Positions 21,561-46,189 of a DNA stretch of 64,000 nt are shown piece by piece. The DNA lies in NCBI GenBank assembly GCA_001600695.1, contig BCKQ01000009.1, positions 1-64,000 of the forward strand, in the 5' to 3' direction. The stretch is from Ascoidea asiatica JCM 7603 (lineage: Eukaryota > Fungi > Ascomycota). Below the pieces are notes generated by a model. It saw only the letters and a list, made by a program, of their open reading frames with translations. It did not search any database and was not told the origin of the DNA. Numbering within the stretch: position 1 is the first letter of the stretch; every line of letters begins with the position of its first letter. The position numbers and the translations under genes were made by a program.

Positions 21561-22205
21561 ATGTCTCTTGTATGTATAATATGGTCTTTGTCTTTAGTCG
21601 TTTCTTCTAACTGTCTTTCATTAATCATTTAAAGACTAATGTATTCTTAACAATATATTCTAACTTTTTTTTTAATTTTGATTATCAATTTAAAGAAATC
21701 TGCTGTCAAATTAGATTGGGCAAAAGTCATCTCATCTTTAGGTCTTAAAGGTCAATCTGCTGCTTCTTTACAGGCTTTTAAAAAGAGAAATGATGAAGCC
21801 AAAAGACAAGTTTTTGAATTATCTCAACAAGATAAACCAATTGATTTTTCTCATTATAAGAAAATTTTAAAAAATCAATCAGTTGTAAGTGAAATTGAAA
21901 ATACTATTAATAATTTCACTCCCGTTACTTATGATGTTTCAAATCAATTGAATATAATCGATCAATTTGAAAAAAAAGCAGTTGAAAATGCAAATGAAAC
22001 TGAATCTTTAGTACTTAAAGAATTAGCCGATTTACAACAAACTTTAGATAATATCAAATCTGCAAGACCTTTCGATCAATTAACTGTTGATGATGTAGTA
22101 AATGCTAAACCTGATGTTGATGAAAAAGTCAAAGAAATGGTTAAAAAAGGTAGATGGGATGTTCCTGGTTATAAAGAAAAATTCGGTGATCTTGTTATCA
22201 TGTAA
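21561..22205 (+). CDS. ATP7: Mitochondrial ATP synthase subunit d; two exons join(21561..21569,21696..22205)
   Basis: Exon 1 ATG TCT CTT is followed by GTATGT at 21570. Splicing to 21696 gives MSLKSAVKLDWAKVISSL, matching Atp7 (MSLAKSAANKLDWAKVISSL). The C-terminus is WDVPGYKEKFGDL. Confidence 0.93.
21570..21695 (+). other. Spliceosomal intron of ATP7 (126 nt, GTATGT...TTCTAAC...AAG)
   Basis: 5'ss GTATGT, branch-like TTCTAAC at 21658-21664, poly-T tract. The first AG downstream is AAG (21693-21695) and it restores frame. Confidence 0.85.
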
Positions 22206-22528
22206 TCAAATTTCAACAAAATTATCAAATTATCAGTTCCTAGTATTTTAATACTATTATTGGTTCATATTTTTTCTATTTTTTTTTGTATCAAATAATT
22301 TAAATAGCTAGCCATAAATTCAAGTAAATTCAAATAAAATAAATAAATTAAGCCAAATTAAATTCAATTAACTAAATAGATAAATAAAAATAAATATTCT
22401 TTTAATTTTAATAATTTTGTCTTTATTACTAATATATTACTCTTGATATACTAGTTTAAATACTACAATGATTTATATTTTTATATCACTATTTACAAAT
22501 TTTGATTTATATCATATATTTAATATTT

Positions 22529-23337
22529 TCAAAGAAAAGAATTACCTATTGACTGTTCTTTAACATACTTTTTGACTAAATTTTTTTTAATATTTTTCTT
22601 TAAATTTTTTGAATCTTTACCAAATGATGAAATTATTTTATTAGCTTTTGCTTCATCTGCAAGAATTTCATTAACCATAATTTCACTTTGAACTTTGAAT
22701 ATCTTTTCTTTTAAAGTATCGTTTTCAAGTTTAAAGATTGATGTAGATGGTGGCCATGATTCTATTTCATATTTCTTTTTTATTGAATCAAGTTTTTTAA
22801 TTTCTTCATCATTTAAATCTGATTTATTCGAACCAATTTTTTCATTAATAAAACTTATATCACTTATAAAATTTGAGTTATTCTTTAAATCATTCTCATA
22901 TTGATAACGTTTTGATAAAAAATTTTTAGCTTTAATATTTTCTTCTTCAAATACTTCTTTTTTAGCTATTCTTTGATATTCCTCAAACTGTTGACCCATA
23001 TTTGATTTTATTTCTGCAATTGCAAATGCTTTATGTTTTGATATTGGACGACAATTCTCAATACGAACAAAATCTCCTTCTTTACAAACATCACCTTCAT
23101 CATGAACAAGAAAATCTTTTCTTCTAATCATTTCCTTAAAAAATAATAAAAAAAAAAAAAAAAGTGTAAAACTCTATTATTAGTAAATTGAAATCATTAT
23201 TTAATATTCTGATTTATGAAATAATAACTTACTTTATTGATTTTTCTATTATAAATTTTTTGTTGAACTCTAACCTTGACAGTTTTACTCATTTTCCCTT
23301 GGGAAATCACTAATCCCAAAAAATTTTGACGGGCCAT
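22529..23337 (-). CDS. MRPS17: Mitochondrial ribosomal protein uS17m; two exons complement(join(22529..23134,23233..23337))
   Basis: Exon 1 (35 codons, missed by the ORF track) [35 protein letters not shown] joins [26 protein letters not shown], giving a complete S17 domain. Confidence 0.93.
23135..23232 (-). other. Spliceosomal intron of MRPS17 (98 nt, GTAAGT...TACTAAT...AAG)
   Basis: 5'ss GTAAGT at 23232, TACTAAT at 23185-23179, long poly-T, 3'ss TTTAAG. The phase-0 join is colinear with the ortholog. Confidence 0.87.
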
Positions 23338-23853
23338 ATTTGAAAGGATTGATATATTGTTAACAGTTATTATTGTTATATATTTATTATGTCAAAGGTG
23401 CTTTTACAGATTAATTTATATTTTCTTACCAGTATATTATAATGTCATTACATTATACAATATAAAGAATGAATTCTATTACTACTATACTACCGAAAAA
23501 AAAAATTAACCAACGTTACTTTACCCGCACATTAGCTTTAACAACGCTTCAACACTTCAACGCTTACAACCTGGATCGGCGAAAAATCACGAGGCTATTT
23601 TACACCAGAATTGTCAAGAGCACGGTTCGACTCATCCAAACATACTATTATCCAAAAATACTATTATTTTACATTTTATACAATCACTAATAATCTTAGG
23701 ACCTGTAAGCAAAAATATTAATTTTGCAATAAAAGATTTAATCAAAAAATATCATATTTGTCTATAAATGAAAAAATCAAAAATGAATTTGATTGAATGG
23801 AATTGAATTGATTTGATTTGAGCCAACAACTTAAGATAGAAACTTAGATTACC

Positions 23854-24738
23854 TTAAGTCAAACTATGGCCTTGACCATTGAAACGATCTACTTTAGGGG
23901 TTGGAGGCTCAGACATTGGTAATATACCTCCTTGAGCATTAGTATTTACTGTTGTAATATTAAATCTCTCTGTGGGTGGTTTAGCTGAAAGAATCATTGC
24001 GGAATAAGGCTCACTTCTACTAGATCTAATGTCAACTTCTTTATAATATTTTAAGCCAAATGGGATCTTTTGAATTAAACCACCAAGTTTCGATTCTATC
24101 CATGGAACTACTTTATGAGTTGGTGGATCTATCAATATATTTAATTTTCCAAAACTTAATAAATAACCTGCAATAATTCCAAAAAAATGACCCATGAATG
24201 AAGAACCTGGAACAAAAATTGAAATTAAAATTAAAGGAATGATTGGTGTTGCAATTGTTGGGAAAGAAAAATTTGAATTAATTTTGAAAGATGGAAATGA
24301 TAAACTTTCTTTATGAGCAAAAAAACTTGAAAATGAAAAACACCAGGCACTTGCACCTATAACATTTGTTTTGGGATAAAATAAGATTCCAACAATACAA
24401 AAAGGAAGCGCAGTTGCAACTGCTAATATATTTAATACAATTCCAGTATAAACGGTTCCATTTTTTTGTTCAAATCTAGCCAAAGGTGCAAATAAAGCAG
24501 CAATATTTAAAACTAAATGAAAAATCGATAAATGTCCCAATGGATATAATGAAATCTTATTCAAATCTAATTGAAAAGGGGCCCAAGGATTTAAAGCAAT
24601 AGCTTCATTGATATTTGTAACAAAATGAAGAAGATATATAATTATTAAGAACACACATAATCCTGTCGTCAAAGCAGGAGCATTGTTTATATATTTCTTT
24701 ATTAAGGGTGAAAGGGTAGCATTGGAAAAGTTAGCCAT
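23854..24738 (-). CDS. RBD2: Rhomboid protease Rbd2
   Basis: YPLGHLSIFHLVLN, catalytic GAS (IGASAW) and GH (SSFMGHFFG), multi-TM, C-terminal FNGQGHSL (SHP-box-like). Confidence 0.88.
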   Translation of the reverse strand: MANFSNATLSPLIKKYINNAPALTTGLCVFLIIIYLLHFVTNINEAIALNPWAPFQLDLNKISLYPLGHLSIFHLVLNIAALFAPLARFEQKNGTVYTGIVLNILAVATALPFCIVGILFYPKTNVIGASAWCFSFSSFFAHKESLSFPSFKINSNFSFPTIATPIIPLILISIFVPGSSFMGHFFGIIAGYLLSFGKLNILIDPPTHKVVPWIESKLGGLIQKIPFGLKYYKEVDIRSSRSEPYSAMILSAKPPTERFNITTVNTNAQGGILPMSEPPTPKVDRFNGQGHSLT

Positions 24739-25211
24739 TGTTTTGTGAATTCCTTTGAGAAAGATTAGGTGGGCTTATTAATATAATCTGTACTGTATCA
24801 ATATTACTGTTAATATCAGTATCAATTTATTTCATACTTTATCACTAGGCTCAATTAGATTATTAGAATAATACAGATGAATATCCAATTTTCTCACAGG
24901 AACATTTAATAAAGGTCAGAGAAATCTTAACCGTTTAACACCTATTCATTTCTTTCGCGTCCGTGTTCACGTTACCCTAGTCTTATGCTCTACATAAACC
25001 ATAAGCAGAGCCCTGATGTAATAGGTCCAAGTTTTCCTTAGTAAAAGCCCTAAGGTACCGGGCAATTTTTACCTTTTTTATAATTTTTAGATATTTTTTA
25101 TCTAATTTTTTGATTTAAGAGTATTTATTGAATTAATTTCATTCAAAATATATAGAAAATTAATTTACACTTCAAAACTGTATAGAATAAAGACTAAAAC
25201 GATTTGATTAT

Positions 25212-26624
<1,413 letters not shown>

Positions 26625-27317
26625 TTACTGCTGAATTGTATTTTGAATTATTGTATGACTAATGTCTTTTTTATTTTAGTATTTTAATAGCTTTGCTTGT
26701 TTCTTGTTATAGTCCTTTCTACTAACATTAATATTTTCACTTTGTATTAAATTTATTTTTCGCCCGTAGATTGAAGCATTACTCCAAAGTTATCAAATTT
26801 GTTGAAGTCAGGGTAAGGAATTTGTACTTTGAAAATGAATGTTGGATGCTAAGATTGTACAGTATTTTTTATTTTATTTTTCTCTGATTTCATAAACTCC
26901 AACAGCCGAGGCTTTTGAAGCTCTTGCTTTTAAGCTAGATGGTGCTGAACAATAAAACTTATAGTTAATAAGAATAGTGGAAATAATATATTATATAATA
27001 ATAAACGAATAGAAGTAGAACTATAAAATCATAGAATTGTAGAATTTTAAAATTGTAGAATTGTAAACCATTTAAAGTCAAAGATAGACTACAAAAGCTT
27101 ATAAAAATTGAAGTGAAAAAAAGAAAATGAAAATAGAAATATAAGGAAAATGGTAATGATGATAAAAATTATAATAAAAAAGATGATAAAAAATATAAGA
27201 AAAAAAAGATAATAAAAGTGAAATTGAAAGAGTATAAAAATGAGAATAAGAATAAGAATAAGAATAAGAATTTGTGAAAATGGAAACAAAATAAAAAGGA
27301 AAGGAAAAGGCATAAAT

Positions 27318-28658
27318 TCACTTTTTTGTTGGATCTTGTCTTTCAAGTACTTCTTTTGCGGAACCTAATAATCTTTTAAAACCATTTTTACTTAATGTTG
27401 CAACAGTCACAGCAGTTTTAGCAGTTATAGTTGCAGCTCTTGGTTTATTATTTAGTAAAGCAGATTCACCAAAATAATCACCTTTTTTTAAAGTAGTTAT
27501 TATACCAGCATCCTTTTTTATAACATCAGCTTCACCAGATTCAATGAAATAAAAATTTTCACCAGTATCACCTTCATTAACAATATTTTGACCAGGATTA
27601 TATGACTCAGTTTTTAGAGCATCAGCTAGTTTATTTCTTTCATAAGGGGATAAAATGGATAAAAGAGGAACATCTTTTAAAAAATCTTCATACATAAGTC
27701 TCTTTTTAGTGGTACGATCTAATAAAATTCTTCTGAAAGTAATTCTATCTAAAGCCCATAATATACAATCAGAAATAGCCAAAACAGTAGCAGCTCTTGG
27801 AGAATTGTACATTAAAGCTAATTCACCAAAAGACCCCCCAGGACCAGAAGTACCAACTTTAATATTATCTACATAAAATTCTACATTACCCTTTTCAACA
27901 ATATAGAAAAAATCACCATGATTACCTTGTTTAATAATTTCTGTATTTTTGTTAAATTTTTTTTCTTTCAAAGCATGAATCAAAGTATTTAAAGAATCTT
28001 TATCTAAGTTTGAAAATAAGAAATTTTTAGTAACAGCAGTATTTAATCTTTTTAATTGATCATTTGTTAAAGAAGTGTTAATTGGAGGCTTCCAAGAATC
28101 ATTTTTGAAGGTATTTGGATTTAAAGTTTCGGCGCTTACAGAAGTTCTTCTTGCTAAATTATATTGTAATGGGATTTTTGATAAAGCCATTGCAGCAAAA
28201 CCAGAACCACTTGACTTAGAATTATTACTATTTTCATCCTTGATATGATTACTGTCGTTGATATTATCATTATTGTGGAAGGAATGAATGGTGGTAGTTG
28301 ACTCAGGTATGGTATCAATTGGATTGATTGAAGAACTATTATGTATCATGGAAGTTGATAAAGGAGATTGTATAGAATGTGGATCATTATCCCCGAATGG
28401 AATTTTAAAAGAAGGACCATTATCATTACCTTTTGAGTTTGAAATTGAATTTGAAATTGAATTTGAAGTTATTGGATTTGCATTTGAAATTAAATTTAAA
28501 TTTGAGTTTTTACTTGAATATAAAATTTGTTCTCTTTGAATTTGTAATTTATTATTGAAATAATTTGCACAGAATTGAATAATATCATTTGGCTGATTTT
28601 TGATTATTTCTTTATTTAAGATCTTTAATTCTTCAGTATAATTTTTTGGGAGAGACAT
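27318..28658 (-). CDS. BCY1: cAMP-dependent protein kinase regulatory subunit
   Basis: N-terminal D/D domain, inhibitory site RRTSVSAE and two cNMP domains (FGELALMYNSPRAAT; FGESALLNNKPRAAT). Confidence 0.96.
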   Translation of the reverse strand: MSLPKNYTEELKILNKEIIKNQPNDIIQFCANYFNNKLQIQREQILYSSKNSNLNLISNANPITSNSISNSISNSKGNDNGPSFKIPFGDNDPHSIQSPLSTSMIHNSSSINPIDTIPESTTTIHSFHNNDNINDSNHIKDENSNNSKSSGSGFAAMALSKIPLQYNLARRTSVSAETLNPNTFKNDSWKPPINTSLTNDQLKRLNTAVTKNFLFSNLDKDSLNTLIHALKEKKFNKNTEIIKQGNHGDFFYIVEKGNVEFYVDNIKVGTSGPGGSFGELALMYNSPRAATVLAISDCILWALDRITFRRILLDRTTKKRLMYEDFLKDVPLLSILSPYERNKLADALKTESYNPGQNIVNEGDTGENFYFIESGEADVIKKDAGIITTLKKGDYFGESALLNNKPRAATITAKTAVTVATLSKNGFKRLLGSAKEVLERQDPTKK

Positions 28659-29756
28659 TTTGAATTAAAAAATATATGTAAGATTGATTGGGATAGAAAC
28701 GAAATGAATAAGATATAATAAATTAGATTCAGGCTGATAGATTAGAGTGGAGTATAATTGGATATAATTGAATTGAATTGAATTGAATCTAATTGAATTG
28801 AATCTAATTAAATTGAGCTGGATTAAATTGGTTGAATTGAATCGAATTAAATTCAAATAAGTTATTGCACCTAAGATTTATTTAATAATAAATTGAAAGA
28901 TAGTATCGAAAGAAGATTAGCTGAATTGCAAGAAAGTTTGTTAGCATCTGTTTGAAAGCTAAGTTACTGTAAAGTTATTTTACTACTGTACAGCTGGTAC
29001 AAGTGCCGCCAGAGTGCGATTTCAGACAATTGTAGGCACAAAAGATTCAACACCCAACGTCCGCCGGACACGGCACGCCACCGTCCTTAATCCACGGATG
29101 GTTTGTTCTTTTTTCAATAACGTTAACGTTACACTATTACGTTACCCGCGATAAGTTTTACTTTTGTACACGTGCCTAAAGGAGACCACTTTTACTTTTT
29201 CATTAAGTGTAAACCGGGTAGGTATACCGGAGTACACGGCGGAAACGGAAAATAGGGGACATTACCTCTAGTGAGCTTGATTTCCAAAATAGGGGTTTGG
29301 CCTGGAGGTCTGGACTCATCGCCTGGTTCATAATCTAAGATTATGGCAGTTTGCGGTACATAGCGCTATTATTGTTAATTTACTGGATAATAATGCCACA
29401 CCTATGGTAGTGTAACTTTAACTTGTTAATCTACAAGCCCTACAATAACGCTAACGTTGGTAGTAATGATTATTTTCCATAAGAGAGACTAATATCATAA
29501 TACCAAAACCTCTCTGTCTCATTCATTGCCAATTTGATTCAACCACCTTTCCATTTATTTCATTTACCAAAGAGATCAGTCCCAAAATAAGTTAAATAAG
29601 ATATAGTGATACATAAAGATATAACCTAATATATCTTACTTATTTTCATCTCATTTTTAAGTATCTTATGAATACCATTTGAACATATAGTTATTATAGA
29701 TATTGGAGAAAATATAAAAATTCAACTCAACTTTTTTTTATATTTCTTTTATCAGA

Positions 29757-32700
29757 ATGGCTTTAACTAAAAGAAGAAATAAAAATCAATCTGATGCCAG
29801 AAAAAAATTAATCAAAGCAAGTTATACTCCAAAAGCGAAATCAATTGGTATTTCTGATTTAACTTTGTTAACTGAGATTACTGATCAAGCAATCAATGAT
29901 ACTTTACAAAAAAGATTTGAAAATAATCAAATTTATACTTATATTGGGGATGTTTTAATAAGTATAAATCCTTTTAAAGATTTAGGTATTTATACTGATC
30001 AAATTATGGACACTTATAAAAATAAAAATAGATTAGAAGCTCCCCCTCATGTTTTTGCAATTGCTGAAAAAATGATTAATAATTTAAAAATTTATAATCA
30101 AAATAATTCCGTAATTATTTCCGGCGAAAGTGGTGCAGGTAAGACTGTTGCTGCAAAGAATATAACTGAATATATTTCAAAAATGTCTATAAATAATGTA
30201 AACTCAATTTCAAATTCAAATATAAAAGAAATCAATGATAAAATCTTATCTTTACAACCTTTATTAGAATCTTTTGGATGTGCGAAAACTTTAAGAAATG
30301 ATAATTCATCAAGGCATGGAAAATTCACTCAAATTAATTTTAATAATAATTTCAATCCAATTTCCGCAAATATTATCAATTATTTATTAGAAAAAGAGAG
30401 AGTAATAAGACAAATTAAAAACGAAAGAAATTATCATATATTTTATCAATTAACTAAAGGTGCTTCTGATAGTTATAAAAAAAACTTTGGCTTACAAGAT
30501 CCAGAATTTTATAATTATACAAAAAACTGTACTTCTGTAAACACGATTAATGATTTAAATGATTATAATCAAACTATTAAATCAATGAATATTATAGGTT
30601 TGAATCAATTTGAGCAAGATCAAATATTTAAATTATTATCATCAATTTTATGGATTGGTAATATATCATTTGTTGAAAATGATGAAAATAATGCAGTTAT
30701 TAATGATTCGTCTGTTACACAATTTATTGCGTATTTATTAAATGTAAATCATGAAGCCTTACAAAAATCCTTAATTGAAAGGACTGTTGAAACTAAACAT
30801 GGTATGCGCAGAGGGTCGATTTATCATGTCCCTTTGAATATTGTTCAAGCAACTGCCGTAAGAGATGCTTTAGCTAAAGGTATATACAATAACTTATTTG
30901 AATGGATTATTCAAAGAGCCAATATTTCTTTATCTTCTAATACAACTGAAAAGGTTAATAAATCGATTGGAATTTTAGATATTTATGGATTTGAAATTTT
31001 TGAAAATAATTCTTTTGAGCAATTATGTATAAACTATGTAAATGAAAAATTACAACAAATTTTTATTCAACTAACTCTAAAAGCAGAGCAAGATGAATAT
31101 GTTAAAGAAAAAATTAAATGGACTCCAATAAATTATTTTAATAATAAAATCGTGTGTGATTTAATTGAGAATAAAAGACCCCCAGGAATTTTTGCTGCTT
31201 TAAATGATGCATGTGCAACTGCTCATGCTGATTCCAGTGCAGCTGATCAATCATTTGCTCAAAGACTAAATATGGTTGCAGAAAACAATCACTTTATTTT
31301 AAGAAGCGGAAAGTTTATTATAAAACATTATGCTGGTGATGTAACTTATAATATTAATCAAATGACCGATAAAAATAAAGACCAAATGTTAAAAGATTTA
31401 ACTGATTTATTACAAAGTTCAACTGATCAATTTTTAGTAGATTTATTTCCAAGTGATGATTCAAATTCTGCCTCAAATTCAATCTCAAACTCAAAAAAGA
31501 AGCCCCCAACTGGTAGTGATAAAATCAAATCAAGTGCAAATGACTTAGCTTTAATGCTATCTAATTCAACACTATCTTATATTCGTACCATAAAACCAAA
31601 TCAAGAAAAACAACCGTTAGTTTATATTCCAAAAAATGTTCTTTTTCAAATCAAGTATCTTGGCTTGAAACAAAATATTTTAGTTAAAAGATCTGGTTTT
31701 GCGTTCAGAGCTACCTTTGAAGATTTTTCAAATCAATTTTTCCTTTTATCTAAAAAATGTTCTTATGCAGGCGAATATATTTGGAAAGGAGATGCTTCAT
31801 CTGCGTGTGTTCAGATTTTAGCGGATGCTGGTGTAAATAAAAGTGATTATCAATTAGGTATCACTAAAATTTTCATTAAAAAACCAGAAACTTTATTTGC
31901 TTTAGAAGACTTGAAAGAATCTTTCTGGGATAATATGGCAAAAAGAATTCAAAGAGCTGTAAAAAGATATTTAAAGAAAAAAATTGATGCTTGTATATTA
32001 ATTCAAAGAAAATGGAGGGAAAAAAAAAATGGAAACAAATTTGAACAATTACGTGATTATGGTAATACTTTATTAAATCACAGAAAACAAAGGCGATCAA
32101 TGTCTTTACTAGGTTCTCGTCAATTTCTTGGGGATTATTTAAATTCAAATATGGGCGGATTAGGTGCTTATATTTTAAAGCAAACCAATATTGCTGAGAA
32201 AATAATTTTTTCAATGAAAGGTGAAATTTTGTTAAGCAAATTTGGAAGGTCTGCAAAGAGATTACCAAGAGTAATCTTTTTAAGTACTAAATATTTATAT
32301 TTGATCAATATCGCTAACGACAATAATCAGATCTCTTATATTATTGATAGTCAAATTTCTACTTCAAATTTGAATCAGATAAATCTAAGCAATCTTCAAG
32401 ATGATTGGCTTGCTTTAATATTAAATTCAAATTCAGTACCTGATATCTTGTTAAACTGCATTTTCAAAACTGAGCTTATTACACATTTGAAAAAGCTTAA
32501 TAGTAATTTACAGATTAAAATTTCGGATTCCATTGATTACCACAAAAAACCAGGAAAATTGCATAAAGTCAAAACTGAAATTAATCCACAAGCCCCTAAA
32601 TACTCTGATTCATATAAGGGTGGGAAAATCTCAGTTCAGCAAGGTAATCCACCTTCTTCTCGTCAAAAGAACAGACCACAAAAAAAAGCTTCTGATTTGA

Positions 32701-33605
32701 TTGATGAATATAGAAGACAAATTAAGCAAAACTCCTCCATGAATACCTTTATAAAGCAATCTAGCAGTCAATTTTCACAGCCCACAGGCTCTAGGGGTAA
32801 TTACCCAACTTCATCAGTTTCGAAAATACCACCTGCTCCTCCTATAATTAGAAATAATCAAAACTCTGCAGTTTCCAAGATACCACCGGCTCCTCCTGTA
32901 ATTAGAAACAATCAAAATCAATTAAATCATGCCACACCACCACCACCCCCTTCGTTGAGAAATTACGAAAATAATTCTCCTTCAAATACTGCTTTTAACT
33001 CACCTTCAGTTAATCAAGGGAATGGAGCAAATTCATATTATAGCATACAAAACAATGGTGTTCCCAACACGGGCCACTCAATACCCAAAAAAAGTCCAAG
33101 ACCTAAACCTAAACCTGTTGCTCCTAGAAGACCTTCAAAACCTTTGAAACCGGTAAAGTCTAAACGTCCTGTAAGAAAAGTTGTACCACCTCCACCACCT
33201 CCTCCACCACCTGTTGTCGAAGTACCAAAATATGAAAAGTATCAGTCAAATTATCAATTTGTTTCTAACACTGAAAATGAGTTTCCATTATCGGTAAGTG
33301 AAATAATCTACATTAGCAAAAAAGAAGATAATGGTTGGTGGCTAGCAAAGTCTTTGGATGAGAAAAGAGAAGGATGGGTACCTGCTGCTTATCTATCCAA
33401 ATATTCGGAAAGTTTCCCACAAACTGCGAATGCTGTTTCCGTTGGAAATAATTCTAAGCCAGCTGATTCTCTCAGTAAACCAGTACAAGCTAGCAAACCT
33501 GTATCAAGTTCTCTTGAATTCGATTTAGAACAAGCCATCAAAAACAAAAGAAGAGATAGTTCCAGCAGCGAGGATCGAAATGATGATGATGATGAAGATT
33601 GGTGA
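29757..33605 (+). CDS. MYO5: Type I myosin (Myo3/Myo5): motor, IQ, TH1, Pro-rich, SH3, acidic tail
   Basis: GESGAGKT, NSSRHGK, DIYGFE, TEDS-site RRGS, SH3 (GWW...GWVPAAY) and C-terminal DDDDEDW. Confidence 0.92.
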   Translation: MALTKRRNKNQSDARKKLIKASYTPKAKSIGISDLTLLTEITDQAINDTLQKRFENNQIYTYIGDVLISINPFKDLGIYTDQIMDTYKNKNRLEAPPHVFAIAEKMINNLKIYNQNNSVIISGESGAGKTVAAKNITEYISKMSINNVNSISNSNIKEINDKILSLQPLLESFGCAKTLRNDNSSRHGKFTQINFNNNFNPISANIINYLLEKERVIRQIKNERNYHIFYQLTKGASDSYKKNFGLQDPEFYNYTKNCTSVNTINDLNDYNQTIKSMNIIGLNQFEQDQIFKLLSSILWIGNISFVENDENNAVINDSSVTQFIAYLLNVNHEALQKSLIERTVETKHGMRRGSIYHVPLNIVQATAVRDALAKGIYNNLFEWIIQRANISLSSNTTEKVNKSIGILDIYGFEIFENNSFEQLCINYVNEKLQQIFIQLTLKAEQDEYVKEKIKWTPINYFNNKIVCDLIENKRPPGIFAALNDACATAHADSSAADQSFAQRLNMVAENNHFILRSGKFIIKHYAGDVTYNINQMTDKNKDQMLKDLTDLLQSSTDQFLVDLFPSDDSNSASNSISNSKKKPPTGSDKIKSSANDLALMLSNSTLSYIRTIKPNQEKQPLVYIPKNVLFQIKYLGLKQNILVKRSGFAFRATFEDFSNQFFLLSKKCSYAGEYIWKGDASSACVQILADAGVNKSDYQLGITKIFIKKPETLFALEDLKESFWDNMAKRIQRAVKRYLKKKIDACILIQRKWREKKNGNKFEQLRDYGNTLLNHRKQRRSMSLLGSRQFLGDYLNSNMGGLGAYILKQTNIAEKIIFSMKGEILLSKFGRSAKRLPRVIFLSTKYLYLINIANDNNQISYIIDSQISTSNLNQINLSNLQDDWLALILNSNSVPDILLNCIFKTELITHLKKLNSNLQIKISDSIDYHKKPGKLHKVKTEINPQAPKYSDSYKGGKISVQQGNPPSSRQKNRPQKKASDLIDEYRRQIKQNSSMNTFIKQSSSQFSQPTGSRGNYPTSSVSKIPPAPPIIRNNQNSAVSKIPPAPPVIRNNQNQLNHATPPPPPSLRNYENNSPSNTAFNSPSVNQGNGANSYYSIQNNGVPNTGHSIPKKSPRPKPKPVAPRRPSKPLKPVKSKRPVRKVVPPPPPPPPPVVEVPKYEKYQSNYQFVSNTENEFPLSVSEIIYISKKEDNGWWLAKSLDEKREGWVPAAYLSKYSESFPQTANAVSVGNNSKPADSLSKPVQASKPVSSSLEFDLEQAIKNKRRDSSSSEDRNDDDDEDW
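32812..32919 (+). repeat. 54-bp in-frame tandem duplication in the myosin tail
   Basis: SVSKIPPAPPIIRNNQNS / AVSKIPPAPPVIRNNQNQ, with synonymous differences between the copies. Confidence 0.8.
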
Positions 33606-37000: not shown

Positions 37001-37069
37001 ATTTGTTCTACTTTGTTTCATCCATCTAGTAGATTTTCGTCTTTCAAACTTTTCCTTTTTTGATGACAT
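34034..37069 (-). CDS. FYV8: Fyv8-like low-complexity protein
   Basis: N-terminal ERRKSTRW...WGDSSDD and C-terminal DFQAIL...EEFQYDTGIQSWL resemble the conserved ends of Fyv8. The middle is S/N/D-rich. Confidence 0.65.
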   Translation of the reverse strand: MSSKKEKFERRKSTRWMKQSRTNDEWGDSSDDDSDESEYSSDSDSGSGSDASYNANDHGSSHNQAHVDASVSCNSPLNLKKNQIPNLPSIPMEYKQQYNSQINVNKTDNLTEDENNIQIKNYSNNFNESDTKDSINPTKANGDKSVILPPPSRPNIDLKKKVVINSNEELVQTGDFHLNKAPFSFVLGDETKKNDNLNYNSDGSKNSNHSKFSKTSFSSSNSFNSNHSLINLGNANKSTTSNNGILSFNDNNSNNDTANLHANSQQELIDTLTKELSRNSAYICSSDEENIQNKTFNDIEKKGFFKPISDDSFPSDDYGSDNLDIIEDLKPLNKNNISSKGKRPISVISSNSAFDNYADMINNLDHIVKNGDLSSQESETNSQKINEEENANMVNNSNDNLYNSDDNKSNLYVSRNQTVIQPLSPGRSLNSFSGVSNNNSVNNSNKKSLNSSFDNSAGNFDYNKTTIASNPLDNIERKLSTSSSELSFKVSDENKINVISAKHLALSKNDSKDSIKLDSASNLNSNLDSKSKVYINIDNFEKDLHGPNIENGIGNNLSDISKNNIEQLNYSTENYFGKVLSNTSDNVEDDSFSDFKTEYAQEDKNISGLGSLKSDSFVRKSEKEQVNADIGINLDSDLHASPDLNSNSDSDLDLDMAVGEPGGFWIPVDGTIARKPKSSTAFIDERRLGNSPNLPTFSEKTVNNNNILTESMNNDPTDTSNINGENNNLHFISNPPSAVEIKIEKPEESIKESIFNPYTSLVENNKTVNTHDIFGEVGGTGSTIMSESSFKTAFDSNKDLPSSPLDIQELENEKKEQLEIKKKEQKIVQNDNKVKLEELKSNTITFNFDKRKLPLHDFQAILSIKDEDLKIKKLKTAKLEEFQYDTGIQSWLEIMLKDPANSYTPAYSRDMQKIYDNVIKEQLKNNMNLNKNKGSPMRRTTHRRTASSMISEEITDKIGSIKLPGLRKGGERLIEGVAGHGGNATRKAGRKASKFTNRFLSKGKKLINKES

Positions 37070-37661
37070 TATTATAATACTGAATCTATAAAAAACTGAA
37101 AGTTCTATTAAGAGTAAAAAAATTATTCTGCTCTTGGTATCATATTAGTTTACAGCAAAGCTATAGCTTTCAGAGATTATTTTTAGTATTTGATGTTTTG
37201 TTTTTGAGATCAAGTTGGGAGGTGAAGCAGAGGGATCTTTGTAAATAATAAAGGTTACTTGCCCTTTTCCGCTCCGTGGCACCTTGGCAGTGGACCTTCT
37301 AAATTTGCCCTTTTTAATGGACACTTATGCCACCTTTGCCACATTTTTCTTTAAAGTTCTTTTATCCCAAGACCTATTTTTCTTGAGAATTCATTAAAAA
37401 ACTCAATTATTAAAGAAATAATTTCAACTGAAAAAGATTATGCTCAAACTGTAAGGAAATTTTAAATGAAAATAATAATATTGATATCAATTTATTAAGA
37501 GATTCTGAAGAATTAACTCATTACTGAGATATTGATGAAGTTGTATTATATCATAATTTCTAAAAGATATTCTCGATAATGTTTTTTATGATTTCTATCC
37601 CCAAAATATAAATAATAACTCAACTAATAACCAGAATAAACATAGATATTCAACTGATTCT

Positions 37662-39800
37662 TAAATAGTACTTTTATGTAAATCATGAATTCTTTCATTT
37701 TCTGAAACATCATTATTATGGACTATTTTGACCATTATTATCAGCTTCTATTTGGGTGATGAAAAAAAAAAATTTTATTTAATTTGGTAATATTAGATTC
37801 CAAGTATTCCAAGTTTTCCAAGTTTTGATCAAAATTTGTAGAAGTATTATTCAGAATACGATTTATCAATATTATTATCCTGAATGAAAGTATGCTGTTT
37901 ATTACTTTTAATCAAAGGAATTATCATCTGAAACTTTGATTAAATCAAACAAAAAGAGTTCAATAGAAATGATTTATTAATTAATAATTGTCTTATAATT
38001 TAAAAGTTTGACTCAAATATTTTTTTTGAATCAAATTTTGAGAATCAATATGTACTAAAAAGATCAAGTAAATTTCCAATTATAGCAGTTTCTACATATT
38101 GAAGGTTTCACACAAGTAGAAACTAAATTGTACTTAGATAGTATGTCATCAGTTACTACTTTAACTCTATGATTTAAAATATTCACATTTCAATTTTTAT
38201 CTGTAACAACATCATAAATACATCAATATTCTGTATGGCATTGAGTGTCCATTCCACAATCAGCAATAGAGCATGAACTACTTGCACCTCTACAAACACC
38301 CATATATTTTGGATCTGCAGTATCACCAATATGTCAAATATGTTCATATTTTTCTGCCAAACCTGGTGGCATTGATAAATGTAATCATTTTGTTGGTAAT
38401 AATTCACCAGGAGCTTCAAAGGCAACATTAGGAAGTCCATATGTTCTACCTAATAAAGAAGCAAACGAATCACCTAATCAATGTCCAGTTACCCCATATT
38501 GTATCTGGATTTGGATATAATTTAGTGACATTTGAAAATGTTTTTAAAGCTGCTGTATAATATCTATCTTCACGATATAATTTTTTTTCTGAACAAGATT
38601 GATCACAGCTAAAGGAGCATCTGAAATAATCTCATGCAATGCTCCATAAATAGCTTATTCTTGCACAGCAGCAGGTGAGTGATACTGTATATTATCATTC
38701 ATTTTATGGTTTGGGATAGTATCTGGTGAACCAAATATTGAATCTATAGAGTTTATAGCATTATCTGAATTAATTTGAATATCATTATTTTTCTGATTAT
38801 AAAAAGAATAGACCTGAAAACTTGTATCCTTTAAAGTAATTGCCATCGTAGAATTATTATCATCAACAAACACTTGACTTCTTAAACCATCATCCATCCA
38901 TCCAAAACCTTCATGATTATGAGTTTTATTATCATCATTCCAGCCAGGTTCAGAAATATTATACCAATAAAAAGTTTCATGAGGAAATTCAACATAAGCA
39001 TCTGCACACATTCGAGCTAATGTTAAATTTGTAGTTTTATCTGTTATATTTGAAACATTAATATGAATATCATTCCAGTTTAAATTCAATTGATTCTGTG
39101 TATTAATATCGGATAAATTTTGGTCATGAATTAAATCTAAATATTGAATAGGATTATAAGATAAATATTTAAAATTATTTGAATTATTTAGAACATTTTT
39201 TTCATTTTTTATAAAATCTTTTGAAATTAATTTTTTTATTTTATATTTATTGAAATTTTTTATTGGCAAAGTTATAGTCCAAGGAGAAAAATCTCGATAA
39301 AAAATCTGGCCAATGAAAAAGGACATTATCATTATTTTTATTTTTATTTTTATTTTTTTTTAATAAAATCATCAGTTAAATCTAATCTAAAGTGAAAAAA
39401 AACTATCTTTTTCTATACTATGATGAAAAACATTTCTAATTTTTAAGTAGTTAAAATTTATAAGATCCTTTTTTTTTAACTGGTAATATTAATATTCATT
39501 TCTTTTTCTAAATCTTTTTCTTCTTGATCAATACTATGTAGACTATCTAAAAAGGTAATGGAGGACCGTTAGTTATAATGGCCCATTTAAATAATAATTT
39601 AAAGATTTTAATATTGATTCAGATTTTTTTTCATAACAATTTGGTATGAATATTAAAAATGATAATGTAACTGTCAGAAATAGAATCAGAGAAATAAATG
39701 ATGTTTTTCTTCTCTTGAAAAGCTTTTATTGATTTGATTTGAAATTAGAATTATAGCTTGAGTCATCTTTTTTTTTTTAAAATAATTTTTGAATTATGGA
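37662..39800 (-). pseudogene. ATG15: ATG15 vacuolar lipase pseudogene (boundaries approximate)
   Basis: Across frames: TM-like SFISLILFLTVTLSFLIFIP, LARMCADAY, GFGWMDDGLR, CCARISYLWS, VTGH*LGDSFASLLGRTYGLPNVAFEAPGELLPTK*LHL, HI*HIGDTADPKYMGVCRGASSSCS, CIYDVV and CYNWKF. Several stops and frameshifts. Confidence 0.9.
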
Positions 39801-40226
39801 GAATAAAATATATTCGAGAATAAATTTATCTTCAATATAGTTTTTTGCATGCGTAACACGGTTGTCAACCATAATAAATTGCGCTTACAATATCACCTTA
39901 TTCATTATTGAGAAACAAAAATATCGAATTTGATATATTTATCAATTTCAGACTCCAATTCTACATTTTCCTTTTCTAATTAGCTACAAATGATAATAAA
40001 AATCAATTATCAAATGAAAATTTATATAATATATATATTATATATCAATTATAAAATGTGAAATATAAATAGAAAGGATAAACATAAAATATAAAATATG
40101 AACTATGAAATTTGAAATATATGAAAAAAAATAATGAAAGCTGGAATCTAAAATTTTGAAGAAAAAGTAAATATGTAAAAAATTAAACAGTTAAAAAGTG
40201 AAAGATAAAAAAGGTAAAAATATGTT

Positions 40227-41903
40227 TTAACCAAATAACATATCTAATATTCTATTAAATCTCGATACTTTTTTCTTATTTTCTGATTTTAATTCTGCAA
40301 AATATTCTGCTTCATGTTTTTCAATTTCTTCTAGTCCTGTTGTAAGATCTGCATCTTCTGGTTTAATAAATTTAGTTCTGAAAATCAATTTCCATCCAAT
40401 AAAAATTGCAATTGAAATAAATAACATAAGATAATCATATAAGAAATCTTTAACAACCCATCCTCCTGGTAAAAATGTTTGATATCCATAAACTATAACC
40501 ATTGAAAAAGTAAAAATCATACCAAAAATAGCTGTATATGGTTGGAAATATGAAAAATATGGTAATGTTTTACGATCAATACCTTGAGCTTTAGTTGCAC
40601 GATAAAATCCTAAATATGTTATACACATAAATGTATAATTTAAAACTTGTGCTCCACTGCATAAATCAACTAACCATGTAAAAACTGTTGATGCACTATC
40701 TCCTAATTGAAGTAATGATAATAACGAAAATAAAACTCCCATTCCAACACAATAAATTGGTACACCTTGTTTTGTACATTTACAAAAGATTTTTGGTGCA
40801 TATCCTTTTAATGCTAATCCATAAAGACATCTTGATGAACAATAAAGATATGAATTACCTGCTGAAAATGCAGATGTTAAACATAGTACATTAATAACAT
40901 GAGGTAAACCATTTATACCTAAATTTTCCATTGCAATAACATATGGAGAAACTGTTGCATTTCCACCAGATGTATTGTTAATTTTATCATTTAAATTAGT
41001 ATCATTTGCTGCAACTAAAATTCCAACACTTAAAGCTCCTCCAATATAAAAAATTATAAGACGATAAAAAAATGTTTTAAAAGCTCTTGGAATATTTTTT
41101 CTTGGATTAACAGTTTCACCAGCAATCATTGAAACATATTCACATCCAACAATTGTAAAAAGTGCTGTAAATATACCTCCCGCTAAGAATCCTTCAAATC
41201 TACCTAATGAACCTGTTGCAATATATTCTAAAAATGGTTCAGGTTTATTCCAATTCCTAAAACCAAATACATCATGTTTTGGATTTCCACCAACCATTGC
41301 AATAAATGTAAAAACTAATAAACCTGTTGCTAAAATTAATTTACCTAATGATAACCAAAATTCACTTTCACCATACCATCTAACTGCAAAAATATTCAAA
41401 ACAGCATAAATTACAATTTGTATGGCAAAAGTAATTGCAGGTGAATAATCATCTCTCCAAAAATGAATCATACCATTAACAGCAGTAATTTCGAAAGGAA
41501 TATAAATAGCTTCCATAATATAAAAATTATAACCAACAGCAGCTTCAAAAGCTGGATCAATAACTCTACCAGCCATTGAAATGAATGGAGAATCAACAGG
41601 TAAATATGAAACCATTTCTGCACATGAAGCTGTAACTAACATAAATACTCCACTCCAAACAAGAAATGAAAGAAATAAACCACCTGCTCCAGCTTTAATT
41701 AAACTAAAACCAAGATTAACAAATAATGCAGTTCCAATACTACCACCAATACTAATTAATTGAACATGTCTTGCTTCTAATCTTCTTTTTGTATGACTTG
41801 TTCTAATATCAATATCAATTACTTCCCCTTCAGAAGATGAAATAGCATCTTCATTATTATCTTTAACCCCAAGGGCATAAGCTTCTTTTGAAATTTCTGA
41901 CAT
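40227..41903 (-). CDS. AGP2: Yeast amino-acid transporter (YAT/APC) family permease, Agp2-like
   Basis: RHVQLISIGGSIGTALF, IPFEITAVN..IHFWRDDYS and YGESEFWL; about 12 TM segments. Orthology versus paralogy to AGP2 is uncertain. Confidence 0.78.
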   Translation of the reverse strand: MSEISKEAYALGVKDNNEDAISSSEGEVIDIDIRTSHTKRRLEARHVQLISIGGSIGTALFVNLGFSLIKAGAGGLFLSFLVWSGVFMLVTASCAEMVSYLPVDSPFISMAGRVIDPAFEAAVGYNFYIMEAIYIPFEITAVNGMIHFWRDDYSPAITFAIQIVIYAVLNIFAVRWYGESEFWLSLGKLILATGLLVFTFIAMVGGNPKHDVFGFRNWNKPEPFLEYIATGSLGRFEGFLAGGIFTALFTIVGCEYVSMIAGETVNPRKNIPRAFKTFFYRLIIFYIGGALSVGILVAANDTNLNDKINNTSGGNATVSPYVIAMENLGINGLPHVINVLCLTSAFSAGNSYLYCSSRCLYGLALKGYAPKIFCKCTKQGVPIYCVGMGVLFSLLSLLQLGDSASTVFTWLVDLCSGAQVLNYTFMCITYLGFYRATKAQGIDRKTLPYFSYFQPYTAIFGMIFTFSMVIVYGYQTFLPGGWVVKDFLYDYLMLFISIAIFIGWKLIFRTKFIKPEDADLTTGLEEIEKHEAEYFAELKSENKKKVSRFNRILDMLFG

Positions 41904-42762
41904 ATTTATTAAACTTATTTTCTTTTTTATTTATTGATAATATTAATAACAAATGATATAAATATGAATTATGTGAAAATAAAAGAATACTAAAGAAATA
42001 TGATATTAAAAAAATATAATAATAAAAATTAGGATATTAAAAACATATAGGAATTTAGAATCATTTTATATTCCCATGAATAATTATTCTAATCATTTAT
42101 CATTATTATTATTATCATTATTATTATCATTTGAATAAATTTTTATCAAAGGCATATCATACGTAATCTAATTTTTTGATTAAAAAATAAAGTAATTGAT
42201 AGTATTCGGGTATGTAAACTCAGATTGGCAAAGAATAGTAAATACAACAACGTTAATCAATCTGTATATCATTTAGTAGTAATACTGAAGTGTATATTAA
42301 AATAATTGTAATGTTGATAGTACATCCTCTTTTTCTACACAGAATATTTGTTTAACCTAAAATTCAATTTGAGTAGTTGCATCAAAGATAAACATTAAAA
42401 TGAGATGAAATTTATTGAATAGAAAATATTTGAAAAGAAATTGAAAAGAATTGAAATATTTTCAAATATCTTGATATATTTCAATGTATTTTTTCAATAT
42501 TTTTCATAAGGTTTCATATTTTCATATCTTCATTTGACATGTTACAGGATATGTTTTTACTGTTTTTATGTATGTTCGTTATATTGTTTTGTTTGCACGG
42601 GTATTTTCCATAGTAATATGAGCATAAATAGAATAAGCGTCGATAACAAAGTTTGTTTCAACGGTGCTGCGATAAGAATTTGACGTTCTTATCGGCTGCC
42701 AATCAGTGGAAATCTGTGCGCCAATCAACCGAGCTGGAGCAGTAAACACAAAAGAAACAACG

Positions 42763-42812
42763 TCTTCTTCTTCTTCTTCTTCTTCTTCTTCTTCCTCCTC
42801 CTCCTCCTCCTC
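42763..42812. repeat. (TCT)n(CCT)n microsatellite
   Basis: Direct reading of the trinucleotide run. Confidence 0.85.
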
Positions 42813-45084
42813 ACATTTATTCATACTCATATCCTCATCATCACCAACTTCTTTGTCTTTTTCTTCTTTAATCTCACTGGTCTTTCAAAGTAATCAGCCT
42901 AATGTCTAAGGAAAGTCTTAATAATTAGTTATTAATTCAGAATGTAATTTTCTATTCGGAATATTCAAAGACATTTTGAAAACATGAAATGTTTCTCACC
43001 GTTGAATTTGAAAATCTATTATCCAAGATTATTGATGATTCGTATTACTAGTAGAAATTTCGATAGTGGTAGAAATAAGGTAAATTACTTTAATTTTGAA
43101 ATCAAAATAAATTTTAATTATTTATCTATTAAATTATTCAGTTAATCGAATGAATTTAAAATTATTGTGCTAATTTATTACTGTACGGTAATTTAATAAT
43201 ACTTAAAAAATATTTAAGTAATACTTTGATAGTACTTTGAAGAAATCTGATAGGCAATCTAATTATTTAATTTGAAAGCTAAAATTAAACTCAAAATTGA
43301 GTAAAAAAAAAATGTCTTAAATGTTGAAAAAAGTGTACCCTTTTTTTTCAATCTAAAAATATGGACGGCTACATAGTTTATGAGAAAAAGAATGTAAGAT
43401 TAGTATACTTGATGCAATATGCTTCTATGAATTAATTCTATTTCTCCAGAATAAAAATAATAATCAAAATGAATCTACTAACGTATAAAAATTTGAGTTT
43501 ATCAAATTATCCGAATTGGTCTTAAATTCTTAAATTTCATTAAAAAAAATCTAAGACCCTTAATAGAATCTCATACTATTGACAGTTTATTGAATCATTT
43601 CTGTTTGTAAAATGAGTATTTTTGAAACAAAAACTGGAAGAAGGAAATGAAAAGTACAAAATCATCAATAGATCTTAAATTCTATCCATTTATTTAAAAT
43701 AATATTTCTTAGAGTAACCTCTAATCAAATGGCAATAGCTTCATACTACGATCCATAGAAAATCATTTTTTCGTGGAGTAAAATTCATAATTTAAATAAA
43801 ACATTATGCCTTGTGAGAATTAGATATAATTGATATAATAGCCAATCATACTGACTTTCATATTGATTATCAAACAGATTAATATTATCTATTCATAATT
43901 ACCATAATTTTGGAAAATTAGCAGTTGGTTCAAAGTCAATAGCTCTTTGTACTTTTTTTCAAAATAAAAATATTCTAAAATCTCAAAGCTACTCCTTGAT
44001 CAATAAAATAAACTAAAATATGCATAATTAAAAAAGTCAAGTGGTAGCTGTTAGCTTCCAATTGAAAGAAAGTGAATATCAAGAATGAGACTAGTTCAAT
44101 AGCTTGAAAGACAAAATAAAATAATATTCTAAATTCAAAGAAACCATAACAGGCAGTATTAAGAACCATAAACACCATTTACGATATCTTGAAATAACGT
44201 TAGCCTATGATTTTAGCTTGGGCTCACAGAAGTGGTTGATTTTCAACCCAAGCTTTTGGGTTCACAGCAACTTTGATAATTCTGCGTGGCTGTGAAACAA
44301 GGAATATTTTCCTTTTTCAGTAAACTGCTTGTTACCCGCTCCACTGCAGTCGATCCGATAAAGCACTTTTCCGAAAGCCCAACGGACCGCACGATTTGAG
44401 ATAAAAACTAATTACCCGGTGATTTGTTTTGAACTACATTTAATTCAATTGAATTGAATTTGTGTTCTTAAAAGTATTGAAATATTTCAGATACGTAAAT
44501 TGAAGTAAAACTCAGAAGAAATACCATTTGAATCAAAGTTATTCTTGATTACAAAATAATCTTTTCTTCAAATCAATTGTTCTTTTATGGAACCAGTGGT
44601 CCTCCATTTACAAATGGTATTTGACCATATGATCAAAGGCATTGAACAACATTTTCAATTACTTTTCTAATTTTGGTTATTTTTTTAACATTTTCAATAT
44701 TTTCAATATTTTTAGTTTTTTTTTAAAAACTTACTTGATGCATTACTAGGAGGTTATAACTATTTTACAAAATTTTAGTAACTGTTTATCTAGTCTTAAA
44801 TAAATTAGGTTTGAGTAGCGTTTTCTAAATATTTTCTTTCTCTTTTGAATATTATAGAACAATTTTCAAACTTTAAGCATAAATAATTAAAATTAAATTC
44901 AACCGTTATTCTATCACAATATTTTATAATATGAAATACTACATAGTATATCATCTTGAATTATTATTTTTTTCATATACGAGCATTAGTTTTTCATGTA
45001 TTGTAATCATAATAACCTACAGGATATATAGGTATATATATATATAAAGTATATATACAGTATATCTATCTATATCTGTTTATA

Positions 45085-46189
45085 TCAATTAGAGTCAGTA
45101 AATTCATATGAACCCATTGGAAAGAAACCACCGGAGCTTTAAAGAAAAATATGTTAGTATTATTAATTCAATTGAATTGAAGATTGATTTATTTTTTAAT
45201 GAATTTTTTAATGAATTTTGTAAAAAATATACATACTTTGAATGTCTTGAGAAATAATCAAAATCTATACTTATAGCATTTGCTAAAATTACAGCTTTTT
45301 CATCAAAAGATAAAGATTGATTTGAAATATTTGAATAATTATTATAATCATTATCAGGTAAATTATAAAAAGCAGAAGGATCCATTCTTAACATATAAAC
45401 TCCAGTATCAGTAAATAATTCTCTACCTAAACCTACCCAATTTCTATCTACAGAACCAATAATTTGATTTGATTCATTTTTAATTTGAAAATCAAAAGAT
45501 AAAAAAGGTGCATCAATTGCACCAAATTGTGTATAAAAATCTGAATTTGAATCTTTATTATCAGAAAGAAATAAATTATAACGTCTTCTCCAAAAATGAA
45601 AACTTTGAATAGTTTCACCAATAATTATATTATTATTTGGTAAAATTGCTTTAATATGAGAATTTATAAAAGAAAATGGTCTTTTAATTGTTAATAATAA
45701 ATTATTATTAATATCAAATATATCAACAATAAAAGGTCTATGAAGTCTAAAAATTTGTCTTTGAATTGTATTTATAATTCCTGGATCTCTTTCAGCAATT
45801 GAACCAATTAGACCACCAGAAGCATTTTGAATTATATAACGATTTGCTTGTTCAAAACCCAAGAAAATATTCATCATTTCCATATTTCTTGAAATTACAA
45901 GAGTTGGTTCTGCTAAAATTGAAGCTATACCATCATAATAATTTATAACACTATTAGAATTATTCTTATGATTATGATTATTATTTGAAATATTTTCAGA
46001 AGGATAAAATGATAAATTATCAATATTATTATGTTTTAATTGATCTTTATAAGGTTTTTTATAAAATTTTTTAGGGGTGGATTTATAATTCGGAAGAGGA
46101 GAATAAAATCTTTTTGAAAGTAAAGAAAAATTTATTTGTCTTTTTAAAAAAATCTTAAAGGAATTCGAATTATACATGAAGATAATCAA
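45085..46189 (-). CDS. AIM25: Mitochondrial scramblase-family protein; two exons complement(join(45085..45136,45237..46189)), start codon uncertain (likely the ATG at 46177)
   Basis: MEMMNIFLGFEQANRY, RLHRPF, WVGLGRELFTDTGVY and SIDFDYFSRHS. Splicing gives the C-terminus FSRHSNSGGFFPMGSYEFTDSN*, resembling the Aim25 GGF tail. Confidence 0.9.
45137..45236 (-). other. 3'-located spliceosomal intron of AIM25 (100 nt, GTATGT...TACTAAC...AAG)
   Basis: Canonical GTATGT (45236) and TACTAAC (45159-45153). The first AG after the branch point is AAG. Confidence 0.88.

Follow-up and report, generated by a model that had tools for sequence, protein, structure and literature searches.

Gene structure of the window

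The window, the whole 64-kb stretch of the Ascoidea asiatica contig that was analysed, carries three genes with a spliceosomal intron, ATP7, MRPS17 and AIM25, and each of the three introns ends in AAG. Their features, in positions of the window, are:

ATP7 exon 1: 21561..21569, + strand, ATG TCT CTT (MSL); the A. rubescens orthologue likewise has MSL ahead of an intron in this position
ATP7 intron, 126 nt: 21570..21695, + strand, donor GTATGT, branch site TTCTAAC at 21658-21664, acceptor TTTAAAG (AAG), the first AG, 32 nt past the branch A
ATP7 exon 2: 21696..22205, + strand, 169 codons plus stop, matching S. cerevisiae subunit d (E 6e-66)
MRPS17 exon 1: 23233..23337, - strand, 35 codons, residues 1-35 aligning to S. 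cerevisiae uS17m 1-35
MRPS17 intron, 98 nt: 23135..23232, - strand, donor GTAAGT, branch site TACTAAT at 23185-23179, acceptor TTTTAAG (AAG), 45 nt past the branch A
MRPS17 exon 2: 22529..23134, - strand, 201 codons plus stop, matching uS17m (E 9e-32), query residue 1 being chain residue 36
AIM25 (phospholipid scramblase) exon 1: 45237..46177, - strand, the assumed start being the first ATG (46177) and the 3' end lying in phase 2 (..CAT TCA AA)
AIM25 3'-terminal intron, 100 nt: 45137..45236, - strand, donor GTATGT, branch site TACTAAC at 45159-45153, acceptor CTTTAAAG (AAG), the first AG, 17 nt past the branch A
AIM25 exon 2: 45085..45136, - strand, completing Asn, then SGGFFPMGSYEFTDSN, then a TGA stop

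A preliminary description of this stretch had placed AAG acceptors at the ends of these introns and held that AAG is needed at each if the protein is to be colinear with its orthologue. Both statements stand: the intron coordinates and terminal motifs agree with the sequence, and when the exons were searched separately against homologues, with the junction codons translated apart, exon homology at every junction called for the AAG. Exon 2 of ATP7 matches yeast ATP synthase subunit d, the alignment starting near residue 5, and is 67% identical to A. rubescens; there is no ATG near its start and, because the first in-frame ATG lies 147 codons into the exon, an unspliced ATP7 would be without a usable start. 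The spliced product reads MSL followed by KSAVKLDW... and is 172 aa long, as is the A. rubescens protein (MSLKAAVKLDW...), and the next AG 3' of the acceptor belongs to a TAG whose last base is 21714 and would break the frame. Exon 1 of AIM25 is 52% identical to A. rubescens Aim25p across 98% of the query, and Pfam PF03803 is found on AIM25 homologues; the spliced C-terminus, ..SRHSNSGGFFPMGSYE.., fits the homologue pattern ..SRHSN[SR]GGL.SFGSYE, whereas the unspliced reading does not. Here the next AG is a CAG 61 nt further on, past the stop. In the MRPS17 intron a TAG and a GAG, 6 and 8 nt past the branch A, are skipped; no named Ascoideales protein was among the results of the MRPS17 homologue search.

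By their sequence features the three are predicted U2-type introns in the budding-yeast style, each having a GTATGT-like donor, a TACTAAC-like branch site 10-60 nt ahead of the acceptor and a colinear frame restored by its removal. In all three the AAG is the first AG that lies 9 nt or further from the branch point, and none offers an in-frame YAG alternative, the nearest other AGs being no more than 8 nt from the branch A, as in MRPS17, or else 3' of the acceptor, where they would break the frame or come after the stop. The lengths, which had been remarked on as uniform, are confirmed at 126, 98 and 100 nt, and are simply typical of this genome, where the median is 98 nt (41 introns). Relaxed and consensus scans of the 64 kb found no further credible intron, and a search of the window against Rfam, at gathering thresholds, was negative. 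A candidate intron at position 296 was rejected; a stop precedes its donor and the region is subtelomeric and non-coding.

Orthologous introns in relatives

Gene order around ATP7 and AIM25 is conserved with Ascoidea rubescens DSM 1968, and the introns of the two genes there have the same position and phase, the same GTATGT donor and a similar length (82 and 90 nt). They differ at the 3' end; A. rubescens has TACTAAC and TAG in both, while the window has TTCTAAC and AAG in ATP7 and TACTAAC and AAG in AIM25. A second, Logan-assembled relative also has an AIM25 intron of the same position and phase, and this too ends in TAG. Since the orthologous introns of relatives use TAG, the AAG state of the ATP7 and AIM25 introns is not conserved, and the idea that AAG would be shared by sister species fails at these sites. 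One of the three clear introns of A. rubescens, in an LSM gene, ends in AAG.

Acceptor usage across the genome

The survey of acceptors covered 356 kb of genome sequence together with coordinate-only pattern searches. Outside the window, 39 introns are supported by reading frame or homology, and these end in TAG (18), CAG (10) or AAG (11), never in GAG; most were ascertained by GTAWGT plus TACTAAC, so that introns with weak signals are under-sampled. A further 39 candidates outside the window, taken on the consensus pattern alone, comprise 27 TAG, 5 CAG and 7 AAG, and about one fifth of them may be chance matches (55 matches against 12 in a control). Pooled, AAG accounts for 18 of 78 acceptors, about 23% (95% CI roughly 15-34%). 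An AAG share of only a few percent had been named beforehand as the result that would speak against the preliminary description; at 11/39 in the supported set and 18/78 overall the share lies above 5% (p about 4e-8 to 1e-7). We found no statistics on the -3 base in PMC10581693, PMC2483917, PMC13148404 or PMC1978503.

The stronger proposal, that the acceptor consensus has shifted to AAG, did not survive the survey, in which YAG is the majority class genome-wide, at about 72-82% of acceptors from the supported to the pattern-typed set. The view that the lineage prefers AAG, or has it as its consensus acceptor, can appeal to the three of three in the window, but TAG and CAG together end 28/39 supported introns and 32/39 pattern-typed candidates and the orthologous introns have TAG, and with the survey contradicting it in this way we regard it as scarcely credible. 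Three AAG acceptors out of three exceed what a base rate of 5% would yield. At the measured rate (0.23-0.29) the probability of drawing AAG three times out of three is 0.012-0.024, and as several hundred windows were scanned, the occurrence of one such window among them is unremarkable. Because AAG ends only about a quarter of introns genome-wide, and because relatives have TAG, the three of three is best read as a small-sample draw; it is reasonably likely that the window holds a chance cluster from an enriched minority class and does not reflect a new rule. The common YAG rule applies here too, if less strictly, and the departure is one of degree, inside the known HAG rule.

Homology at the junctions supports AAG introns in other genes as well. 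In UBC9, exon 2 begins at Ubc9 residue 14, following 12 codons plus the junction codon, and in PMI40 it begins at PMI residue 12. The beta-tubulin gene reads MREI / IHISAGQCGNQI / GAAFW across two introns, into which an automatically predicted 346-nt intron was resolved; their acceptors are TAG and then AAG. A proteasome alpha subunit gene likewise uses TAG and then AAG, around a 20-nt micro-exon; the GAG acceptor of its automatic model was rejected in favour of this micro-exon and an overlapping AAG.

Composition and context of the -3 position

The tails between branch point and acceptor are 37% A and 53% U, in a genome of about 26% G+C. AAG is rarer than in non-coding background, where it makes up 49.7% of HAG (p about 2e-6), and in the pooled data it is also rarer than tail composition predicts (38%; p about 0.004). 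CAG occurs about 2.5-3.5 times as often as tail composition would predict. In the supported set taken by itself, A and U at -3 stand at 11:18, near the tail ratio of 0.37:0.53. GAG acceptors occur in none of 42 introns (39 outside and three in the window), with G at 2.6% of tail bases and about one expected anyway.

These figures bear on the possibility that the exon-ligation machinery has lost part of its pyrimidine check at -3, in the Prp8 alpha-finger near the equivalent of Gln1594 or in Prp18, Slu7 or Fyv6, so that AAG would serve about as well as UAG and its share would track A/U content. The AAG share is 4-6 times the figure of about 5% for non-YAG acceptors in eukaryotes (PMC8496845), near-neutrality of A and U in the supported set would imply changed recognition, and in S. 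cerevisiae the Prp8 Q1594A mutation lets AAG compete equally with CAG (PMC12707134). However, pooled AAG falls short of the tail expectation and CAG is strongly favoured, and close relatives have TAG at orthologous sites. Q1594 is moreover described as highly conserved, Ala being the only viable substitution and one that is temperature- and cold-sensitive (PMC12707134). The lack of GAG also counts against it, though weakly given how little G the tails contain, since Q1594A raises GAG use. On balance we consider a lost check unlikely.

In the supported set the base before the AAG is also biased: 13 of the 14 AAG acceptors are AAAG, against a background of 48% (p 7e-4), and the motif TTTAAAG is seen repeatedly. 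This might indicate a distinct class of weaker or regulated introns, spliced inefficiently or under particular conditions and maintained by selection, with AAAG or TTTAAAG marking them; natural AAG introns of S. cerevisiae are indeed spliced less efficiently (PMC8496845), and an AIM25 transcript that kept its intron would encode a different C-terminus. But the AAAG context falls to 3/7 among the pattern-typed AAG candidates, and runs of A are expected from A-rich tails in any case. The genes concerned, tubulin, UBC9, PMI40, a proteasome subunit, ATP7 and MRPS17, are unrelated housekeeping genes, and the -3 base differs between relatives. A regulated class seems to us very unlikely.

Branch sites and the AG-free zone

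Across the surveyed introns the distance from branch point to acceptor ranges from 11 to 62 nt, with a median of 23, and in 41/41 of them the stretch that starts 9 nt beyond the branch point and runs up to the chosen acceptor contains no AG at all. Both the distances and this complete AG-free zone resemble the scanning choice of 3' splice sites described for Saccharomycotina that have no U2AF1 (PMC8496845). Branch points had been described as relaxed, and the motifs TTCTAAC in ATP7 and TACTAAT in MRPS17 are confirmed; genome-wide, TACTAAC still dominates. Behind GTATGT at a spacing of 48-72 nt it gives 55 matches, compared with 12 in a reversed-pattern control, while the corresponding counts are 57 against 44 for VACTAAC and 35 against 43 for TACTAAT.

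Discussion

In proposing how AAG came to be so frequent, we favour ordinary first-AG selection combined with weak discrimination against A at -3 and A/T-rich tails, an account that we hold to be probable, if well short of assured. Acceptors would be chosen as in S. cerevisiae, with ligation to the first AG found at least some 9 nt 3' of the branch point. At -3, C or U would be favoured, A tolerated and G avoided, and A would be only weakly disfavoured, by no more than about two-fold against U. Since the tails are rich in A and U and the discrimination against A is weak, AAG, nearly always as AAAG, would have drifted in as the first AG in about a quarter of introns. We infer that the cause is mutation supply plus weak selection, acting with the machinery unchanged.

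What is known from S. cerevisiae is compatible with such weak selection. There, AAG and YAG are spliced equally well in synthetic contexts, and the rarity of AAG has been attributed to the use of cryptic 3' sites, which implies that selection against AAG itself is only weak (PMC8496845). The AAG sites of S. cerevisiae, a minor HAG class that includes Y' element intron 2 and the AAGCAG of ECM33, share with the introns described here a GUAUGU or GUAAGU donor, a UACUAAC-like branch site and a first AG with A at -3. They differ in that AAG reaches about 23-28% in this genome, nearly always as AAAG, against about 5% for non-YAG acceptors in eukaryotes (PMC8496845), the S. cerevisiae baseline in this comparison being a literature value. 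A budding yeast in which about 25% of introns end in AAG lends itself, as a natural experiment, to asking what keeps AAG rare in other genomes, weak selection against cryptic-site use or a hard check by Prp8.

The Prp8 Q1594A allele is similar in that it makes AAG competitive with CAG and so provides a concrete molecular route to altered second-step recognition (PMC12707134). It is nevertheless a laboratory mutant with temperature- and cold-sensitive defects that increases non-YAG use generally, GAG and variants at -2 included (PMC12707134), while the genome described here still prefers YAG and shows no GAG. One could go further and suppose that the spliceosome of this Ascoideales lineage barely separates A from U at -3, with AAAG a genuine third consensus acceptor that owes its origin to naturally evolved differences in the Prp8 alpha-finger region or in its partners Prp18, Slu7 and Fyv6; we think this quite unlikely. 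Were it true, the tolerance of A alongside U in this lineage would be a natural counterpart of the laboratory allele, and a difference in the Prp8 alpha-finger here would raise the interest of this yeast for splicing biology.

The AAG share also matters for annotation. Gene models for this genome, and probably for its relatives, must allow AAG acceptors; without them about a quarter of introns will be mis-modelled or read through, those of tubulin, UBC9, PMI40, ATP7 and the proteasome subunit among them. In the public gene call P0001, a relative's AIM25 intron is read straight through.

Three introns of the window and their junctions

Three genes of the window carry an intron that ends in AAG:

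21570-21695, forward strand: ATP7 intron, 126 nt, downstream of ATG TCT CTT; GTATGT ... TTCTAAC ... TTTAAAG
23232-23135, reverse strand: MRPS17 intron, 98 nt, preceded by 35 codons; GTAAGT ... TACTAAT ... TTTTAAG
45236-45137, reverse strand: AIM25 intron, 100 nt, followed by a 52-nt last exon; GTATGT ... TACTAAC ... CTTTAAAG

The preliminary description had placed the introns here and given each an AAG acceptor, and sequence and junction homology agree on both points. When each exon was searched on its own against homologues, the two MRPS17 exons aligned with S. cerevisiae uS17m, exon 1 over residues 1-35 and exon 2 from residue 36 on. The alignment of ATP7 exon 2 with subunit d of yeast ATP synthase starts near residue 5; the frame of this exon has no ATG near the exon start, the earliest lying 147 codons in, and therefore without the intron ATP7 would have no usable start. 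The spliced ATP7 product is 172 aa long, as is Atp7 of Ascoidea rubescens, and begins MSLKSAVKLDW against MSLKAAVKLDW. The C-terminus of spliced AIM25, SRHSNSGGFFPMGSYE..., matches the strongly conserved end of its homologues, SRHSN[SR]GGL.SFGSYE. A read-through version of AIM25 was rejected, its C-terminus being at odds with that ending.

In all three introns the AAG is the first AG to lie at least 9 nt beyond the branch adenosine; MRPS17 also has a TAG at 6 nt and a GAG at 8 nt, which are bypassed as too near. Relaxed and consensus scans found no further credible introns in the window, and the Pfam domain starts of its large ORFs gave no hint of missing 5' exons.

Acceptors across the genome

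The window belongs to a genome of 20.3 Mb in 71 contigs at about 26% G+C, where it forms the opening 64 kb of contig 9. Yeast intron signals are truly enriched in this genome: GTATGT with a TACTAAC 48-72 nt further on scores 55 hits, and the reversed control 12. Our survey was made on DNA, from 50 loci retrieved around such candidates; most introns entered it by way of consensus donor and branch signals. To be called, an intron had to follow an exon that either had an ATG or was open over a long stretch, and the first eligible AG had to lead in phase into a long frame downstream. Outside the window, 39 introns were supported in this way, many of them in recognisable conserved genes, and they end in TAG (18), AAG (11) and CAG (10), with no GAG. 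A further 39 GTATGT...TACTAAC candidates, about one fifth of which may be chance matches, were typed by coordinates alone in separate AAG, TAG and CAG pattern searches, the first of these trinucleotides being taken; 27 are TAG, seven AAG and five CAG. Among genes with checked junctions, UBC9 has 12 codons and a junction codon before an exon 2 that corresponds to Ubc9 from residue 14, while PMI40 exon 2 begins at residue 12. Two loci combine both acceptor types:

L003 4928-5276, reverse strand: beta-tubulin, two 5' introns around a 36-nt exon (MREI / IHISAGQCGNQI / GAAFW); acceptors TAG, then AAG
L013 4940-5240, reverse strand: proteasome alpha subunit, two introns around a 20-nt micro-exon; acceptors TAG, then AAG

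The pooled AAG share is 18/78, or about 23% (95% CI about 15-34%); the pooled statistics were calculated with 18/77, preceding correction of a beta-tubulin intron. This is far above the ~5% of non-YAG acceptors in eukaryotic introns (PMC8496845; p about 4e-8), the S. cerevisiae baseline being a literature value, and well beyond the few percent that would have refuted a shift. It is also far below the 49.7% that AAG makes up among AAG, TAG and CAG in non-coding DNA (p about 2e-6), and lower than the 38% expected (p 0.004) from the composition of the tail between branch point and acceptor (A 37%, T 53%, C 7%, G 3%). The proposal of a shifted consensus therefore holds as regards the elevation of AAG, but not as regards its dominance, TAG and CAG together having the larger share. 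As the consensus acceptor, AAG is contradicted by both sets (11/39 supported, 7/39 pattern-typed). At a base rate of 0.23-0.29, three AAG acceptors in three introns have a probability of 0.012-0.024, an occurrence to be expected across several hundred scanned windows.

Lengths and branch sites had been described as uniform and relaxed, respectively. The lengths stand, but are merely typical of the genome (median 98 nt; branch-to-AG median 23 nt, range 11-62). Branch sites are moderately relaxed, but TACTAAC dominates: behind GTATGT, VACTAAC shows a small excess (57 against 44 in the control) and TACTAAT none (35 against 43).

Selection of the acceptor

In S. cerevisiae the 3' splice site is picked at exon ligation, scanning running 5' to 3' from the branch point, and its AG forms non-canonical pairs with both the branch A and the G of the 5' splice site. 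The first-AG rule is strictly obeyed here, an AG of any kind being absent from 9 nt past the branch point to the acceptor in 41/41 introns. Measured against tail composition, C at position -3 is over-represented some 2.5-3.5-fold, U occurs at close to its expected frequency, and the deficit of A does not exceed about two-fold; the preference is therefore C, U > A >> G, the familiar order with A less disfavoured.

Prp8 Gln1594 contacts the -3 pyrimidine, and in Prp8 Q1594A an AAG competes equally with CAG (PMC12707134). In synthetic contexts S. cerevisiae splices AAG just as well as YAG, and the scarcity of AAG is ascribed to more cryptic-site use (PMC8496845); A at -3 is thus weakly selected against from the outset. 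A true relaxation of the Prp8-centred check at -3 is the main rival explanation; the A:U ratio at -3 in the supported set, which is near that of the tails, speaks for it, although we think it improbable. We rather favour, with some confidence, weak selection against A at -3 combined with A+U-rich tails as the cause of the raised AAG share. With tails of 90% A+U, a modest drop in selection efficiency would suffice to put AAG at a quarter of sites. The window introns add new cases to a known minor acceptor class that is unusually common in this genome.

AAG acceptors tentatively prefer the form AAAG, found in 13/14 supported cases against a 48% background (p 7e-4), with TTTAAAG recurrent; the share among pattern-typed AAG acceptors is weaker (3/7). 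In the 41 surveyed introns, most CAG acceptors have a T before them. AAAG/TTTAAAG and TCAG suggest that positions -4 and -3 are interdependent, with weaker support in the pattern-typed set.

Related species

The best named protein matches are from A. rubescens (Aim25 52%, Atp7 67% identity), which keeps the gene order around ATP7 and AIM25; the organism is accordingly an Ascoideales relative. The AAG endings do not extend to these introns in relatives, which end in TAG. The A. rubescens ATP7 intron is identical in position and phase (GTATGT ... TACTAAC ... GCATAG), its AIM25 intron reads GTATGT ... TACTAAC ... CTATTAG, and that of a second relative (Logan contig, 65% identical) ... TTACTAAC ... 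TTATAG; thus the -3 base of the two introns is not conserved. AAG occurs in A. rubescens too, in an LSM-gene intron ending GATAAAG, the three introns seen there being too few for a rate. The public AIM25 gene call P0001 (331-1383 of L052, a locus of a Logan-assembled relative) reads through the 3' intron (..SRHSKYVYELNPH..), an example of how such introns become mis-annotated.

Other features

1-100, forward strand: contig start, telomere-like 17-nt repeat, CATCCAACATCAACTGT, in roughly five and a half copies
10149-11335, forward strand: 96-codon TTG-start ORF overlapping by 4 nt a 299-codon ORF without Pfam match
37900-39332, reverse strand: ATG15-like lipase gene
44200-44440 (reverse strand), 42580-42910 and 57315-57760: G+C-rich islands

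The ATG15-like gene has 225 open codons, then two frameshifts and six in-frame TGA, one falling on the catalytic serine of GHSLG; neither TAA nor TAG is among its stops. A pseudogene is the probable reading, and the all-TGA pattern is odd given the AT-rich genome. The islands lie amid 25% G+C intergenic DNA, have overlapping ORFs on both strands and look like structured RNA genes; Rfam at gathering thresholds gave no match for them. A near-identical intron-like element (GTAAGTAGCTTACCATATGGTT ... TTACTAAC) recurs at seven or more sites (in the searched genome, G000, at C1:981215, C1:1030124, C3:800276, C3:1516307, C3:1648337, C6:311814 and C6:627369; loci L028 and L029). In L028 and L029 it leads into no long frame, and it is probably an intron within a repeated gene or retroelement. 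A single gene, split or frameshifted, may underlie the ORF pair at 10149-11335.
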